Assembly (NCBI GenBank): GCA_037379345.1
Contig: CM074514.1
Span: forward strand, 25,420,001-25,484,000
Origin: Perna viridis
Taxonomy: Eukaryota
Direction of reading: 5' to 3'
Length of the DNA: 64,000 nucleotides
In this document: piece by piece, positions 17,841 through 25,882 of the stretch
Layout of the letters: each line of letters begins with the position of its first letter
Position numbering within the stretch: position 1 is the first letter of the stretch
Translations under genes and position numbers: made by a program
The notes under the pieces: model-generated
Seen by the model: the letters and a program-made list of their open reading frames with translations, nothing else
The model's database searches: none
What the model was told of the DNA's origin: nothing

Positions 17841-18311
17841 AACATTAAAATAACAAACTATATATATATATAATCTCGGTCATTTAATAAATTACAATTC
17901 ATAACAACATATTAAAATATAACGTTTGCTTATTTTACAAAATTAATACAAAGCATCATAATAAATACATCTTTGGATATTAAAATGGTTTCCTTGTAAT
18001 GCTTTACAGTGAACTGATATGATGTGTCCATTTTACATTAAATCTCTTCCTCTCAACCTCTCACTCTCATTCATATCCAAGTATCATCTACTGTACCATC
18101 TACTATATAATAACGAGCAAGCGCACTTCTCATTTAGATTATCTCCAATTCTTTTTTCAGCCAAGCGCGCATATAATTTAAATTCCCATACTATTCCTTC
18201 AGCTCAGCAAAAAGATGGATCTCTACAATTCTAGAACATTTTTAAAAAAAAAAGAAAACAAACCTTTGCCAAGTGAAATGCCCAACTTCTGTACTTATCA
18301 TTATTTTTACA

Positions 18312-18492: not shown

Positions 18493-21053
18493 CATTTATT
18501 CTGTACATACATTCATTTTACAGCTCTCAAACCAAATCTCTCCTCTTTCACACACAACTTTCAGTACAATTTCACTTTACTTTTTAAATGCTGTACCCTA
18601 AAACATATTGTTACTGAAAGATATTGCACTGGTCCAGACATGCCGCGTGCAGGAACAGCAGTGAAAAAATGTCTTACTTCATCACTTTGACTGTAGATAG
18701 CGTGATTAATGAAAATAATATGACTAGGTACCATGAACCATGTAAACTATTTAATGCTGTATTAGTATAATAAAGCTTGATATTTTTATGTTCCGACTAG
18801 CAACATTGAATGTTTCAAAAATAGAAAATGTAATTCAAAATCTAACTAGTGGTAAATTACTCTTACATTTTATCATAATCTATATTCATTATCTTCTCGT
18901 TACAAAAATAATAGCAGGCTTGCTTTGATAGGCTTTGAATGCATGTCAAAAGTTATTTCTGACTTTTCAGTGCAGACTTACAAATTACAAAGATGTTTAA
19001 GAAAAACGTAGATTCTACCTCATGATAACTACTTACTATATATTTTTCTTACTAAGATCAATAGAAAATTTTAATAGTTGGCAAGACCCCCTATACAGAA
19101 TAGAACGAATTTAAAAGAAAGCATATTGATCACGTGGTCTTTTGATTCATATTTAAACACTATGTAAACTATTTGGAAATGCATTTTTAAAATGCATTAA
19201 GATTTTAAGATACTGTCGTTGTATTGCAATGGGAAGATTTATAGTTACAATTTTGCGGACAATTTTTTCATTGAAAACGCAACGAAGCAAGAACAAAGCA
19301 TACCACTTACATTCCACACTCACATTGTACTAGGTACGATGAACCTCTCACGTGTTTAGAGATAGTTATTGTTATAAATTTTCATTAAGTCTTGACCATG
19401 AATATCAAATACTTTACAAAATTTAATCATAAACAAAGTATAAATAATTTTAAAGGGGAAGTAGTATTCTGGTGGTAGGTTGGTATCAAGTATTACAATA
19501 TCGTGAGGTGTGAAGCTGAAACAACTCTACTTCGACTAGTTACTCTGTGTGGTATACCGACAGTTGTTTCGTAAATTACTTTCGCATTATAATGAAACAA
19601 CAAAACAAAATAAAACAACCTTGGCGTGTAGACAGAGTTTCCAAGATATCCCCCATAAAATTTGTCAAAATTTATGACTATGTTTTTGAAATCTCTTCCA
19701 ATCAATAAAAGTTATTAGCAATCCTTACAGAGTTGATTAATCAAGGAAAAGACTAGAAACCTTAACAATTTGAAATCACCAAAATTAATCATAAGCAATT
19801 TTCGTCTTATATAAAAGATGAATATATTATTGGTCTGATGAATTGACTTGTTTTGGAATGAGTCATGATTATTGACCAATGCCTTCTTTAGTGGACAGAG
19901 TAATTCATTAGACAGTCATACAGCCTGTTATGAATAATCAATGTAACAATACTAAATTGGAGCCTTTCAAACATTAACAATCCAGTATAACGCACTGTAA
20001 ACCACCAGATAAGAATCAGAAATAAGCCACTTCCATTAGTTTTTGACACTTTAAAACTTTGGGAGTGGGTTTTAAGCCCAACACATCAAGTTAAACACCT
20101 ACTGGATTTTCAAGGGGATAGCGATACTGTCTAAACAATTTAGAACTGTTTATGACGGATCAAAAATAGGCAAAAATCCTTAAAAGCCACCCACGTCTCA
20201 TATTCAAAAAGGCGGAAAAGGATATCGAATACATAAAGTACTGCAATTGGCTTATTATATGGGATAATCTTGTCATGTAAAAAGAGAAGTAGCAAATGTA
20301 AATATAGACAATAAATTGACAATGCAGTATATGATATTCACAAAAATGATCATGCATACTCTTACAAAAACATATACACGAGAATATGTGAAAGACCATG
20401 TAACATATGTCAATCTTTGAACACAAAAGTAATGAACATTTTAAAAACAAACAATGATCTATGAAAGACATTTACATAACTTACTGATCTTGCAGACTAC
20501 CGAAGGAACTGGGGATAGTGAAGAAATAAAAGATTGATTTCACAGAACCGAAAAGAATGCCGAAATATTACAGGTATATAAGGTCTATTTATCTAACATA
20601 TGAAACTGTATAAAATCTCGATAGTTCAGCACAGCAGATTTTAGCTGACATTCTAAATGGGCTAAACTATGAAAATGTTTACTAGTAGTCAGTGTGTCTT
20701 GGCTGATTTCATCAATGCTAGAAACTTTTTTTCCTATAAGACAAAGTAGTTGTGCCATCATGGAACTTTATTTTTCTTTCTTTTCAACTGAACGCTTCTT
20801 TCTAATGATAGAGCATAAAAGCTCGTTCGGTTTTCTACAAGACCAATGTTGACATAAGTACAAATTTCTCTAATCACACAATGTTTCGGAATGACATACA
20901 AGTTGAATCATCTGAGGCAATACCAAAATCACATTCGCCACATATGACCTTAGATATCACAGTTAAGCATGTGACTTCTCGTTACACCATACCAAGTGTT
21001 ATGTTGGCCCGCTTTGTAAAAGTCAAAAGAGCTCTTCGGTCGCATGCATTCAC

Positions 21054-21059
21054 TTTATT
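21054..21059 (-). promoter_or_regulatory. First canonical poly(A) signal downstream of NDNF
   Basis: AATAAA on the minus strand. I found no AATAAA or ATTAAA between the stop (22274) and this site, only weaker TATAAA/GATAAA variants near 21900-21945. Confidence 0.4.
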
Positions 21060-21240
21060 TCATTTTTTTCACTTTTAAACCATTATATTTGGTCTAGGTA
21101 ATAATTGCTCTTTCATTCTGAAGACATAATCACAACATTTTAGTTGAACAAAATAAGTCAGGCGTTAAATTATGCCGGGTGAAGTTCTCCCGGGTTATAA
21201 ATCTAAGTACGAAAATACCGCTCGTATTAAAATTGCTAAT

Positions 21241-21280
21241 TCCGGTACACGTGTTTCATGGAGCAACCTCTCACCGGCAT
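21241..21280 (-). ncRNA. Decayed hammerhead ribozyme relic
   Basis: Minus strand AUG CCGGUGA GAGGUUGCUCCAU GAA ACACGUGU A. The CUGAUGA core carries two transitions, the palindromic stem III ACACGUGU and a GUA triplet are intact, and stem I is largely deleted. Confidence 0.5.
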
Positions 21281-21566
21281 TAGAACCAAATACATTGGAA
21301 GACCTAAAAAAATTACGCAAGAAATACTCGAAACCAAAAATATCAAACTAGAAAGCCAAAACTGAGAAGTTCAGTCAAGTGTCATAGTGCGTTTGAGTTT
21401 TGAAAAACTGTAAATTTCGGTAAATGATCGATGGTATATATGGGGTCAGACAAGTCCGATAATTGGGCTGGTGAATACCCTTGGGGCATTTGGTCCACCA
21501 GCAGTGGCATCGACCCGGTGGTTGCCACGTACAAGTTACCATTCATAAAATAATGCAAATTCCGAT

Positions 21567-21610
21567 ATACTGAACACATGTTTCAAGGTGTAACCCATCA
21601 TCAGCAGCAT
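21567..21610 (-). ncRNA. Type I hammerhead ribozyme (near-canonical)
   Basis: Minus strand AUGCUG CUGAUGA UGGGU-UAC-ACCUU GAAA C-AUGU-G UU CAGUAU. 6-bp stem I (AUGCUG/CAGUAU), intact CUGAUGA and GAAA, 4-bp stem II closed by a U-U mismatch, short stem III. Predicted cleavage after GUU at 21573. Confidence 0.7.
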
Positions 21611-22273
21611 TAGAACCAAATAAATAAATTAATATCTTATTTTGATTGGTCCAAAAAAACTCGAGGCTATCATCTAACTCTATAGACAGCTAACAGCCAC
21701 AATACCTATATGTGATTTAGCTTTTTGGTCAATGTAAATTTGTCTATATTTCTCCCAATAGAGCTATTCTACTATAAAAGTAAATGGTTGTTTTGTCATC
21801 ATGTTCAGTAACTTGTCTAAAAGCTGGTTCAGAAACATAGTTTTTTATGAGTGTAACTACATTTCAGAATATTTTAAACGTATCCCGCCTGCGACTTTAT
21901 AACTAATAGTTTTAAAGCCTTTGCAGCACTTGTCTTTTTTATCATAACACTTGGTTGTCAGAACTTCCTTAATTGTACCGCAAGTGCGTTTTGTTTTGTT
22001 CTTGTCAGCAATGCCACTACTGCAAGATAAGCACTGCAGTTAGAGAAAAAAAACTGGCGCCATGTAAAAAAAAACATTACGCATACATATGAACGACAGG
22101 CGGCACGCGTCTTCCTCAGAAGACCTATCCTTATCAATCAGGTCATCAATACATTAACGGTACAACATTGAACTCCGCTGACCTACGTCTGCACCACCAT
22201 GAAGAAGAGGCACTTCAGATTCAATGTCGACCCTAGTCAATGATACCCCAGTCGCTATTTTTAACATATTGCT

Positions 22274-23646
22274 CTACGGATGTACCTTTGTAGAAGCCAC
22301 TAAACTATTATATAATAAGGTATAACCTTTGCCTAATTGTATAACAACATCAAACTGATACGAAGTCTTACTTTTTAAATTTCTTATTTGATGGTTTAGC
22401 ACCATATTTGGTTTTTCATGTCTCACTACAATACAAGTCACCTTGGTACTATCTTTAACTGGAGACTCACTATTTTTACTGCACTGATTTCGCCGTCTTT
22501 TCCGACGTGCTGTTAACAGTATTTCTTTTTTATATATACAATATTTCTGTCTTGATATTGTACCTAACCAACCTATAGTTAATGAATTATGTGTTGTACT
22601 ATTATCTACGAGAAAAACGTTTGCTTTTCTGGGCAACGAAGGGTATCTTACTTTCCTCTGTGATGTTGATACCATCAGCCGAGCTGTTTTTGGAACATCT
22701 TTCTTCCGGCTTGATACACTTATGAAGTATGTATCCGCCTCTAGATTTCCAACTTTGAAAGTTGATGTCCTTTTGACTTTCTTTTTAATAATCTTTTTTA
22801 CGTTTTGGCCACGCCCATGTCCACGTGACACACGAAATGTCACTCTACCAGTACAAGAATGGACGGCAATGTACAGATCACTGGTATTCTTTAGAACATA
22901 TTTGAATTTATATTCTAACTTTTTCTTCGTAAATTCTACCTCTTGAAGTTTGCCATTCCGTAGTTTTTTCACTCGTTGTCGCTTTTTCCTTTTCTTTGAT
23001 GTCACTGACAACTTTTTATATGCACTACTAAGGTTATGCTGTTTATTTATCGCATAAACATTAACATTATATTTAGTACCCGGCTTGGCCTGTGTGAATA
23101 TATATGACGTGTCTCTGCCAACGCACGTGTAAAAAATATCCTTCGGCTTTGCTGGTTTTACTGGCCTTGCCTTACTGCGAAACAAGTTAACAATATCATC
23201 CTCCCAAGGAAAGAAGAACCCGGTATTTTTGGGGACTTTGTCACCAAATTTATGAGACATGAGTGAACAGTAATTGTCAAAACTTCTTTTTGGACTAACA
23301 GAAATACAGTATGTAATGATATTGCCATATGGTGTTTCATCTTGGCTAGGAAACCACGACACAGTAAAACTTTTTCGTCGTATTCTGTCAACACGAATAC
23401 TGGAATTTCTCGGTAATCTTGGGTAGTCTCTGTCTTTACTTGGAGCAACCGGTTTAGACTTAAGAAATAACTTCACATACGTGTCACTTTCTGTTGGTTT
23501 TATAAAAACAGTATAAATCCCACTTGTATTAGAACTCCTTCTGAATATATGTGACTCGGGACCAGTAAATGAATAAAGCAATACTCCGGTTGGATTTGCT
23601 GGTTCAGGGACCTTTGGTTTATCTTGGATATCAAATAATGGTGTTT
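22274..23646 (-). CDS. NDNF: NDNF/Nord-like protein, last coding exon (FN3-like domains and C-terminal NDNF domain)
   Basis: Acceptor TTCTTTTCTTCAG ends at 23647. A phase-1 join (G+AA = Glu) keeps the frame. The motifs LLYSFTG..SGIYTV..DTYVKLF, YPRLPRNSSIRV..SFTVSWFPS..ITYCISV..FDNYC, KPGTKYNVNVYA and YPSLP..SLTIGW..KYCIY parallel vertebrate NDNF. Stop at 22276-22274. Confidence 0.93.
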
Positions 23647-25882
23647 CTGAAGAAAAGAACAAAGTGGAATTGCAAATGGAACTTCTTTGATGATAGACTC
23701 AATGGTTAAATGATTGTTTTCCTTACAGCAATCACATATCTAGATTGTATGTAGAAGATGGGTAGGAAGATAATATGGGCAAGAAGTAGGTAGGAAAGGT
23801 AGATAATCAAGTAGGCAGCAATCTCGTGAAATAATAATATATCACTGGAGACAATATTTCCAAAAATTCATTGCCATAACCCTATTTCACTACTTATACG
23901 AAAGATTTCGTCAACTGTGATTTTAAATAATTAGAGGAATGAAAAATTAAGCTTGCAGTTCAATACCGCATTGGCGCATATCAATTATTAACTTTCTTGC
24001 AATATCCTAGTACATCAGGGGTCATATGACGAAGAAAATACAAAACTGTTCGAGTATATATGTATGATAATTAACGCTAATATGCCATAATAAAAAGCAT
24101 GAAATTTTGCAGTAAAATGGGAAGTTCATCGTTCTAAGAATATAAACGAGCTTAACACTTTGTACTAACCTGACCCCAAAGCACAATTCCCCATAATGAA
24201 ATCTCATCATATGTACGTGTTAAAGCATATAAAATACAGAGGTAATATATTATCATACTTTTTCGCGAATATTGTCATCAGTTGTCAAAAAATACATTTC
24301 TGGTGAAAACTTCAAAGGTATTATTATTAAAACAAGACCCGATAGGAATTCCAGAACGTCGAAAGATGCGAAGACCTAACGCTATGAATGCATAAAAAAT
24401 TAGTAATGATAGTTGTCTTGCCATACTCTTTTTCCATCATTGTAAAGGTATATGTTTTGTCTACTCCATTGTAATTGGTTATATGTTCTTTTTTTTTCTC
24501 GATACGAGCACGGAAAATGTACTATTGGCATCGCTGCAAACGGGAGCAATAACAAAACGACCGCCAAAGTCTAGTCAAAGAATTGGCGCGCGATTATGTT
24601 GCTTAATTAACTATATTAATGATAATCCAGTTACGATAGATTTCTTCTATTACAAAAATAATTGCAGTGCATGCGGTAAATAAAGGACACAACCTTACGA
24701 GTTTCAATACTATTGTATACCAGTTTTAGTAGTATCATGGATATTGGATGATCGCCCAGAGCACGGAAGAGTAAGTAATTCTATAATGAATCTTCGATGG
24801 TTATGGTTACTAAATCTGTCCGATAACGTATATTCATATTTAGACCAACCTTATATTGACAGAAGCCTTGGTCAATAAAAAAAAGCAACGAAAATCAATT
24901 GAAAAGTAACAGAAGCGATGAGTCGATCAAAGGTTTTAAATATCTCGAAATATTTAGACAGTCCTCTAATATATGTTAAAAGTATAACCTATAACCCAAC
25001 TTGGTTAATGGGTGCGAGTTGTGTTGGCGTGCTCAAGTGTATTATACCTCTTAACTTGTTATAAAAATTTGACATGACAAATACATTTTGGGGGAGTAAA
25101 CTAATCTAGTCTGATTTAAATGGTATGAAAAGGACCCCCTAACAAAGAAAAACTTGAATACTCATTACAAGGAAACCAATTAATTATGACTAGTAATAAC
25201 ATAATTTGGTAAGTGTGAATGGAAAATAAGCGGCCTGTGTGGTCAGAATGCTTATACTTTAATTGTTAAAAAGTTAATTATGTCCATCTCCAGTTGTTCA
25301 GAAAGGTTAGTGACTCCCCCTGAGTAATTGTCAGTTAGTTTCTTGAATTAGAAGTAAACAGAGTCTGTAACGTACAAACAACGTATATCACAAGATGTAT
25401 TCGCTTTGAAACTACAAGACCTGTTTTCGTGAATATATTAAAAAGATTATCCAACAGCGATTTTAATGTAAGTGTTTTATTAGTGTTCATTAACGATAGT
25501 GGTTTTAAAAGGAGTTTTTACCATTTCCTTAAAAAAATCTCTTGTATACAGACAAAACAGTACAACAATAAAGTTACAGAAACTAAAAAATTGAAATGGA
25601 CCAAACCGTATGCAACACGGTTGTTACAATTTCCTCGACAAATTTTTATGTTTAGCCAAAAACAGTACAAAGTAACAGAAACTGCAAATAAAGGAAAATC
25701 GAACGAACCAAACAGTTGGGAACACGGACCATGTAAACTGTAAAGACATCGGTCTTGTTTTCAAAAGCACGTGCCAAATTGTCAATAGTGTACCCGGGTG
25801 GAATGCGGAAAAAAATTGTGAAAAAAAGATATTAATTTTCTATCTACAGTGCTTGTTTGACAAAGCAACTAAGTATATATAC

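Follow-up and report, generated by a model that had tools for sequence, protein, structure and literature searches.

A hammerhead ribozyme downstream of NDNF in Perna viridis, most likely the fossil of a decayed retrozyme insertion

In the window analyzed here, a stretch of 64,000 nucleotides of the Perna viridis genome (GCA_037379345.1, contig CM074514.1, positions 25,420,001 to 25,484,000), a hammerhead ribozyme motif, termed HHR1, is found past the NDNF stop codon, on the same strand as the gene. It is confirmed as a real type I motif, competent as far as its sequence goes, and it is very probably the hammerhead of an old, decayed, 5'-truncated dimeric retrozyme insertion, i.e., a fossil and not a control element of NDNF, since about 2,000 copies exist of the small mobile element it belongs to, a kind already described in mussels, and this one is worn. 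A regulatory role for HHR1 in NDNF is unlikely. Positions below are those of the window, and the annotated parts are all on the minus strand.

HHR1 spans 21556-21622, with its core helices at 21610-21567 and an intact catalytic core. A type I hammerhead at 21610-21567, with intact CUGAUGA and GAAA about 660 nt past the NDNF stop, had been proposed in a first-pass annotation; reading of the minus strand agrees, the distance being 664 nt, and the extendable 6-bp stem I, stem II, GUU triplet, U.U pair and short stem III also described there are all present. Stem I pairs AUGCUG (21610-21605) with CAGUAU (21572-21567) over 6 bp, one being G.U, and a distal extension is found past a 4-nt bulge. The core segments are CUGAUGA at 21604-21598 and GAAA at 21584-21581. 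Helix II (UGGGU-UAC-ACCUU) has 3-4 bp, and helix III consists of A15.1-U16.1 (U16.1 being 21574) and a C-G pair, 2 bp in all, closed by the tetraloop AUGU; given this real helix III loop, HHR1 is not a minimal hammerhead variant. The triplet G21575 U21574 U21573 is a GUU of the NUH type, where the family has GUA, and cleavage is predicted at 21573/21572. Thus, the invariant core, A15.1-U16.1, three helices, an open-ended helix I and an NUH triplet characterize HHR1 as type I, while the G10.1-C11.1 pair, or at least G10.1, is replaced by a U.U at 10.1-11.1, the family majority being G.U. In hammerheads, G10.1 is near-universal but not absolute. All eleven invariant core nucleotides are intact and, as A15.1-U16.1 and a permitted NUH triplet are kept with them, some cleavage by HHR1 may be possible from sequence. 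A U.U occupies the same basal position of helix II in the natural axolotl hammerhead HHR_Amex2, which cleaves weakly, i.e., 22% in 1 h (PMC7229834).

The bare CUGAUGA...GAAA pattern occurs three times in the window against 1.29 expected, which is not significant, and the two other matches (24261 and 38754) are attributed to chance, as the family covariance model does not pick them up. The full HHR1 motif is not a chance match, since the genome holds 1,950 matches to the family core, this one included, and a control pattern gave 0. The family-specific covariance model (R1) assigns 80.1 bits to HHR1 (E ~3e-18). Scanning of 19000-24000 with Rfam models (E<=10) returned no hammerhead match, and likewise none was returned for four loci with intact family copies; since the Rfam models also miss intact copies, this null result is uninformative on HHR1 and was rejected as evidence against it.

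Genome-wide, a 101-nt query yielded at least 702 candidates at first look, and the 32-nt family core was found in 180 exact copies, 1,213 with up to two mismatches and 1,950 with up to three, the window copy sitting at exactly 3 mismatches over the 31 specified positions. This family of ~2,000 copies is spread over many chromosomes. Units in three loci (L013, L014, and L019) are spaced by 381-385 nt with a hammerhead in each, and the flanks across 19 loci are not homologous, given that most copies are terminal or 5'-truncated. Metazoan non-LTR retrozymes have short tandem units (about 170-400 bp) and lack LTRs, a primer-binding site and a polypurine tract. With its short tandem units, dispersed high copy number and non-coding low-GC sequence, the family displays sequence features of such retrozymes, and the HHR1 insertion is one of its copies. 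In the published model of these small, non-autonomous elements, tandem units are transcribed, self-cleaved by their hammerheads, ligated to circular RNA and reverse transcribed by a borrowed enzyme, for which the reverse transcriptase of Penelope-like elements has been proposed (PMC8557442, citing PMC7229834). About 5,000 type I hammerheads have been described in Mytilus galloprovincialis, in 350-390 bp repeats yielding circular RNAs (Cervera and de la Pena, 2020; PMC7229834). The Perna family resembles these in having a hammerhead per unit (381-385 nt vs. 350-390 bp), in being non-coding, AT-rich and dispersed as thousands of dimers or multimers, and in having transcribed copies in a mytilid mussel; unlike them, it is in a different host genus, and the window copy is decayed and 5'-truncated with one dead hammerhead. 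As it stands, the significance of this copy is slight; it adds one more decayed representative of a known element class, from a mussel genus that is not the one of the original description. Penelope-like elements carry minimal hammerheads in their pseudo-LTRs (PMC4209133). Like HHR1, these hammerheads are of type I and tied to retroelements, but in the window copy the hammerheads are separated by a 330-nt non-coding interval and no reverse-transcriptase ORF is present.

The insertion occupies approximately 21200-21650 and comprises HHR1, a 330-nt unit and a second hammerhead, HHR2, as determined by BLAST against 19 other family loci and by alignment A1 with the well-preserved dimers L014, L019, and L013. 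A 25-nt direct repeat recurs in it at a spacing of 330 nt. Within the non-coding unit body (21296-21555), 82 nt (21523-21442) are better conserved family-wide, the nearest other copies being 72-81% identical in the body and 86-90% in this block. ORFs overlapping the unit are short only (55-65 aa), and its GC content is 0.34-0.43. No long terminal repeats were seen at the insertion by repeat search or in alignment A1, and no target-site duplication of at least 8 nt was found around it; the 7-nt AT-rich TAATTTA (21631 and 21172) was rejected as such, a match of this size being expected by chance. HHR2 (21228-21292, alignment A1; 34.7 bits with R1) is dead. Its core reads CCGGUGA, with U4 changed to C and A6 to G, both at invariant positions, and in its stem I the 5' strand has lost 3 nt while the 3' strand is altered to CCGGAA, which is unable to pair with AUGCUG of HHR1.

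The canonical metazoan type I design has a helix I of 6 bp, a helix II of 4 bp, a helix III of 1-2 bp and a palindromic loop (PMC4209133). Helix sizes and palindromic loop are common to the Perna family and to the hammerheads of newt satellite 2 and Schistosoma, which act as dimers (PMC4209133), but the window copy differs from these in that its dimer route would be closed in cis, the partner HHR2 being dead and its CCGGAA not pairing with AUGCUG. The family sequence ACACGUGU is self-complementary, and cofolding of an intact copy gives an extended helix III; the double-hammerhead helix III is predicted to form in this intact copy but not in the window copy. Regarding the single motif, the active fold of HHR1 lies 9.0 kcal/mol above the minimum free energy (MFE) structure, compared with 2.2-3.9 for five intact copies, and the MFE structure is without helix II (z-score -0.01). 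The weak activity forecast in the first-pass annotation is consistent with these predicted energies.

Divergence was measured against two young dimers. The element body is 25-35% diverged (28% in the comparison) and HHR1 14%, a difference that is not significant (Fisher p=0.06), the ribozyme being in any event the best-conserved part when subfamilies are compared, and a chance estimate indicates that three random mismatches leave the core untouched in 25% of copies. At the NDNF locus of Mytilus coruscus, neither sequence search nor the family model detects a retrozyme within 10 kb 3' of the gene, so that the conservation at the orthologous site raised in the first-pass annotation was not borne out. 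Very probably, a retrozyme copy inserted in sense orientation ~620-660 nt beyond the NDNF stop, later than the split from the Mytilus lineage, and subsequent decay killed HHR2 and spared the core of HHR1 by chance. HHR1 itself has lost G10.1 and has a weakened helix II and stem I, and a misfold, in which part of CUGAUGA pairs with the mutated cleavage-site strand, is predicted to be preferred. The insertion is transcribed along with the 3' region of NDNF, probably in long 3' UTR isoforms; its cleavage is expected to be poor or nil, and it would be neutral for the host gene.

The last coding exon (22274-23683, stop TAG at 22276-22274) was the only exon searched against Pfam, and its ORF matches NDNF_C (4.4e-29) and NDNF (3.6e-15), and also fn3. 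With tblastn, residues 74-543 of Mytilus coruscus NDNF (P0003) align to 23683-22280, and upstream exons are found at 32114-31953 and 26009-25887; the host NDNF is 64-66% identical to that of Mytilus. The closest relative with data is represented by a contig (L021) with 87% protein identity, which stops 38 nt past the NDNF stop codon. A hexamer scan detects no AATAAA or ATTAAA between this stop and the hammerhead, and places the first canonical AATAAA at 21054-21059, in agreement with the first-pass annotation. Farther downstream, BLAST of L022 against the window picks out two blocks, 20068-19709 and 19403-19183, with 70-75% identity to Mytilus coruscus DNA lying 2.4-3.4 kb beyond the NDNF stop. 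Both blocks are single copy in the host genome, the Mytilus flank 3' of NDNF contains no further called gene, and no ORF above 103 aa was found. The conservation of these blocks supports a long, conserved NDNF 3' UTR, which would enclose the insertion.

In the stranded run X21 (66 reads, ~3x depth), every read is oriented as minus-strand, i.e., NDNF sense, RNA, which bears out the sense orientation of the hammerhead in transcribed DNA. Sense reads are found on both sides of HHR1 and past the AATAAA at 21059-21054, to at least 20400; in the runs covered, transcripts do not end at this hexamer, and contigs end at 18731 and ~17875, each just past an ATTAAA. The former end belongs to L023 and lies 19 nt beyond a candidate poly(A) signal at 18750-18755; the latter is common to the X1 and X4 contigs (6.2-6.3 kb) and lies just past a candidate distal signal at 17883-17888. 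A (TA)n run at 17870-17860 may instead have broken the X1 and X4 assemblies near 17875. Contigs of X1, X3, X4, and L023 pass straight through HHR1, so uncut sequence across the cleavage site exists. These contigs, like that of L024, are collinear with intron 2 and may therefore be pre-mRNA or DNA; they were rejected as proof of mature mRNA, the RNA status of the runs being a guess. At 21573/21572, X21 displays neither a depth step nor an end pile-up, at a depth of ~3x that is too shallow to see or exclude ends.

It is possible, though the less probable view, that the same fossil lies outside the main NDNF mRNA, poly(A) addition occurring mostly near 21900-21950 and the downstream reads representing minor read-through or another transcript. 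Depth in X21 falls from 2.7-5.2x over 21915-22116 to ~0 over the 300 nt of 21612-21914, the L024 contig ends at 21747, and GATAAA (21943-21938) and TATAAA (21901-21896) are possible weak signals. In addition, some reads at 21410-21625 may be cross-laid pieces of other expressed family copies: 19 of the 66 reads lie only partly on this stretch, seven fit solely 21493-21523, and the expressed contigs of other copies (339-883 nt) have 31 nt in common with the window copy. An intron behind the gap was considered and rejected, as no plausible GT...AG was found on reading and no joints were reported. Early poly(A) addition is, however, at odds with the absence of a canonical AATAAA or ATTAAA upstream of HHR1, with a depth of 2.8-4.7x over 20602-21005 that equals the exon depth on the same strand, with the X1, X3, X4, and L023 contigs that bridge the gap, and with the Mytilus-conserved single-copy blocks farther downstream; moreover, at ~3x depth a 300-nt hole can arise by chance.

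It is very unlikely that HHR1 is a tolerated, attenuated 3' UTR regulator by which part of the mRNA is severed from its poly(A) tail and NDNF output lowered, as in rodent Clec2. The hammerheads of Clec2, known from rodents and other mammals, are of a discontinuous kind with a large loop insertion, are conserved among orthologues from rodents to platypus and reduce reporter expression (Martick et al., 2008, reviewed in PMC2950038), by 80% in the case of Clec2d (PMC2950038). Like them, HHR1 is a sense-strand hammerhead downstream of a stop codon which, if active, would detach the poly(A) tail from the coding portion. Unlike them, it is continuous, derived from a repeat, absent at the orthologous Mytilus locus and of putative activity, whereas the Clec2 hammerheads do not belong to a repeat. 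An intact core with sense transcription on both sides, a probable long conserved 3' UTR, the identity of the insertion sequence in L023, a contig of another run, to that of the window and the slightly better preservation of HHR1 (14% diverged vs. 28% for the remainder, p=0.06) would fit co-option. These are outweighed by the membership of HHR1 in a set of ~1,950 copies, with an intact core expected by chance in ~25% of equally diverged ones, by the loss of G10.1 and a misfold favored by 9 kcal/mol, by the dead HHR2 with its mismatched stem I strand, on which the dimeric route depends, by the empty Mytilus locus and, at low depth, by the featureless X21 profile at the site. The reading of HHR1 as an NDNF element thus holds insofar as the motif is sense-strand, sequence-competent and transcribed, but not as gene-specific, the motif belonging to a ~2,000-copy repeat with a dead partner; between the attenuated regulator and the simple decay left side by side in the first-pass annotation, decay is favored. 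It is very improbable that a co-opted HHR1, weakened by its U.U pair and GUU triplet, cuts a minor share of the long-UTR NDNF transcripts, perhaps only under some conditions. If HHR1 does cleave, a host mRNA would here be the natural target of a ribozyme carried by a transposon and, if co-option were true, a mollusc would offer, in the mRNA for a secreted signaling protein, the first Clec2-like self-cleaving switch to derive from a repeat.

A live retrozyme locus, in which excision from NDNF transcripts would yield a circularized 327-330 nt inter-hammerhead unit, is hardly credible despite the layout as a dimer, where two hammerhead positions flank a unit, and the expression of other family copies (linear contigs of 339-883 nt), since HHR2 carries two substitutions at invariant positions and a deletion (34.7 bits), HHR1 is predicted to misfold, no joints or ends are seen in X21 at ~3x, and the window copy, having no close relative, has not been a source of new copies.

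Some practical consequences follow. Since the Rfam hammerhead models miss this family of ~2,000 copies, a family-specific model is required for masking, and hammerhead motifs in mussel UTRs should be compared with repeat families before any regulatory reading.

HHR1, the type I hammerhead lying 3' of the NDNF stop, is a real hammerhead on the sense strand of transcribed sequence. On the minus strand, the 5' strand of stem I (AUGCUG, 21610-21605) is followed by the core CUGAUGA (21604-21598), a helix II reading UGGGU-UAC-ACCUU, GAAA (21584-21581), a minimal helix III (C-AUGU-G), U16.1 at 21574, U17 at 21573 and the 3' strand of stem I (CAGUAU, 21572-21567), a layout from which cleavage is predicted between 21573 and 21572. 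Every part of the motif described at 21610-21567 by the first-pass annotation can be found in this reading, which agrees with it on the predicted cleavage site as well. The ORF ending at 22274 carries the Pfam domains NDNF and NDNF_C and is coding exon 3 of NDNF (coding exons 1 and 2 at 32114-31953 and 26009-25887). Between its stop and HHR1 the distance is 664 nt, where some 660 nt had been proposed, and a hexamer scan detects no AATAAA or ATTAAA in this interval, the first AATAAA being located beyond the motif at 21059-21054, as had been claimed. No hammerhead match is returned by Rfam for the HHR1 region at E<=10, but this carries no weight because Rfam also misses intact copies of the same family. 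The hammerhead models of Rfam release 15 miss the intact copies at loci L002, L009, L014 and L019 even at E<=10; in a family of about 2,000 members, these surface just as spurious snoZ223-like matches.

A second stretch resembling HHR1 lies 330 nt downstream, and the 101 nt around HHR1 yield at least 702 first-look candidates in the 723-Mb genome, the 40 scored matches being 79-88% identical and spread over many chromosomes. The family majority combines a stem I AUGCUG/CAGCAU, with a distal 6-bp extension past a 4-nt bulge, a CUGAUGA core, helix II GAGG-UUACU-CCUU, then GAAA, and helix III C-ACGU-G with a GUA triplet. Its 32-nt core pattern occurs 180 times exactly, 1,213 times with at most two mismatches and 1,950 times with at most three, against 0 genomic matches for a control pattern. 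Paired hammerheads are spaced 381-385 nt, with identity between their two units reaching 98%, and the ORFs overlapping a unit are all short (55-65 aa). This is the architecture of a metazoan non-LTR retrozyme. The genome of Mytilus galloprovincialis holds some 5,000 type I hammerheads within 350-390 bp repeats; they self-cleave at a rate of about 0.1 per min and yield circular RNAs in abundance (PMC7229834). The present host is also a mytilid mussel but not a Mytilus, its NDNF being 64-66% identical to those of M. coruscus and M. edulis. The family has the helix dimensions of the canonical metazoan type I hammerhead (helix I of 6 bp, helix II of 4 bp, helix III of 1-2 bp with a palindromic loop), a design that is often efficient only as a dimer (PMC4209133). 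At L002:1345-1411 (minus strand), 168 nt from the first hammerhead of that copy, a sub-variant with helix II GAGAC...CUCCUA and another distal stem I suggests that the ribozymes fall into at least two subfamilies; several have also been reported in Mytilus. The hammerhead segment alone can also be found as a 34-copy tandem array (45-nt period, 94% matches) at G000:C1:47448269-47449799 (L025:269-1799), and again at G000:C1:47552731-47552852, with CACCAU instead of CAGCAU as 3' strand of stem I; this array is a minisatellite born of the ribozyme core.

Aligned with well-preserved dimers, the window insertion is a 5'-truncated dimer extending from about 21650 to about 21200. Its second hammerhead, HHR2 (21292-21228, minus strand), has U4 changed to C and A6 to G in the core, together with a 3-nt deletion and an altered 3' strand in stem I. 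The family model gives 80.1 bits to HHR1 versus 34.7 to HHR2; such scores do not track competence, three non-training copies above HHR1 carrying core-killing substitutions. HHR1 departs from the family majority in helix II (G10.1 to U, A10.2 to G), in the cleavage triplet (A17 to U) and in stem I (C to U), the latter two changes being shared with the family copy L008. It is exactly three mismatches from the 32-nt pattern, and three random mismatches over the 31 specified positions spare the eleven invariant core positions in 25% of cases, so that, of some 740 copies at this distance, around 180 are expected to be core-intact by chance. Relative to two young dimers, HHR1 has diverged by 14% (6/43), HHR2 by 24% and the rest of the element by 28% (85/303; Fisher p=0.06 for HHR1 versus the rest), a difference that is no evidence of post-insertion selection, since a comparison of subfamilies shows the ribozyme to be the most conserved part in any case. 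Apart from one 82-nt block, the unit body is only 72-81% identical to its best other genomic copies and has no close relative; the copy is therefore old. That block (21442-21523, minus strand) is GC-richer and 86-90% identical among copies with the remaining body at 72-81%, and other expressed family copies match it exactly over 31 nt (21493-21523).

With regard to activity, the hammerhead fold of HHR1 is predicted to lie 9.0 kcal/mol above the minimum free energy (MFE) structure, versus 2.2-3.9 kcal/mol in five intact copies. The MFE structure contains a shifted stem, created by the A17 to U and C to U changes, in which UGCUGA (including C3-A6 of the core) pairs with UCAGUA; helix II is absent from both MFE and centroid, and the fold energy is no better than that of shuffled sequence (z = -0.01). 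When an intact copy is cofolded, helix III is extended to 8 bp as in the classical double hammerhead; no such helix forms for the window copy. In the double-hammerhead model, each active site would be assembled from two units, one providing the core and the other the cleavage strand, and an in-cis dimer route would here need HHR2, with its dead core and a 3' stem I strand unable to pair with the 5' strand of HHR1. Given this predicted misfolding and the dead partner, poor or no cleavage would be expected, in line with the weak activity anticipated from the motif alone. Some residual activity would be compatible with the sequence: in axolotl, a natural hammerhead whose helix II also has U.U at its base reaches 22% cleavage within one hour (PMC7229834).

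In the stranded RNA-seq run X21, all 66 reads mapped over 20400-23400 are oriented as expected for minus-strand RNA. Depth is 2-4.7x over the exon (22274-23400), 2-5x at 21915-22274, about 0 at 21612-21914, 3.4-4.6x at 21410-21611 (roughly 2-4x once seven reads matching 21493-21523 alone, which stem from another expressed family copy, are set aside), 0.75-1.8x at 21006-21409 and 2.8-4.7x at 20602-21005; sense transcription therefore runs past the AATAAA at 21054. No end pile-ups or joints are reported in this mapping, whose depth is far too low to bear on cleavage. The 300-nt gap could be due to chance at this depth; alternatively, NDNF may have a proximal 3' end at about 21900-21950, an interval in which all candidate hexamers are weak. 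The gap is bridged by contigs of other runs, and it is rather doubtful that most NDNF transcripts end upstream of HHR1. Contigs of the runs X1 (6,348 nt) and X4 (6,203 nt) cover all of 20400-23400 and extend about 2,525 nt past 20400 to about 17875, just after an ATTAAA at 17888-17883, although an assembly break at a (TA)n run near 17875 could also cause these ends. Contig L023 spans 24793-18731, ends 19 nt after an ATTAAA at 18755-18750 and, across the element, is identical to the window save one T-run indel at 21659. All three are collinear with intron 2 and the RNA label of their runs is a guess, so they may come from pre-mRNA or DNA. At 20806-20813, a 19-nt insertion polymorphism (tandem duplication) distinguishes sequencing runs.

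No family copy is detected by unit BLAST or the family model in the 33-kb NDNF locus of Mytilus coruscus, including 10 kb 3' of the stop; the hammerhead is not conserved at this orthologous site, and the insertion is specific to the lineage of the host mussel. For a closer relative (87% protein identity), the single contig reaches 38 nt past the NDNF stop. HHR1 belongs to a worn copy of a mussel retrozyme that is abundant in the genome; its partner is dead, it is not conserved outside the lineage, and its predicted fold favours an inactive structure. Between the attenuated regulator and the simple decay envisaged by the first-pass annotation, decay is thus very probably the right reading; a Clec2-like regulatory role, conceivable if residual cleavage persists, is possible but quite unlikely. 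Further 3', two blocks (20068-19709 and 19403-19183, minus strand), single copy in the genome, share 70-75% identity with Mytilus coruscus DNA located 2.4-3.4 kb beyond the NDNF stop, a distance that is similar in both mussels. With no other gene called in the Mytilus coruscus flank, they probably belong, as conserved elements, to a long NDNF 3' UTR, for which they provide independent support.
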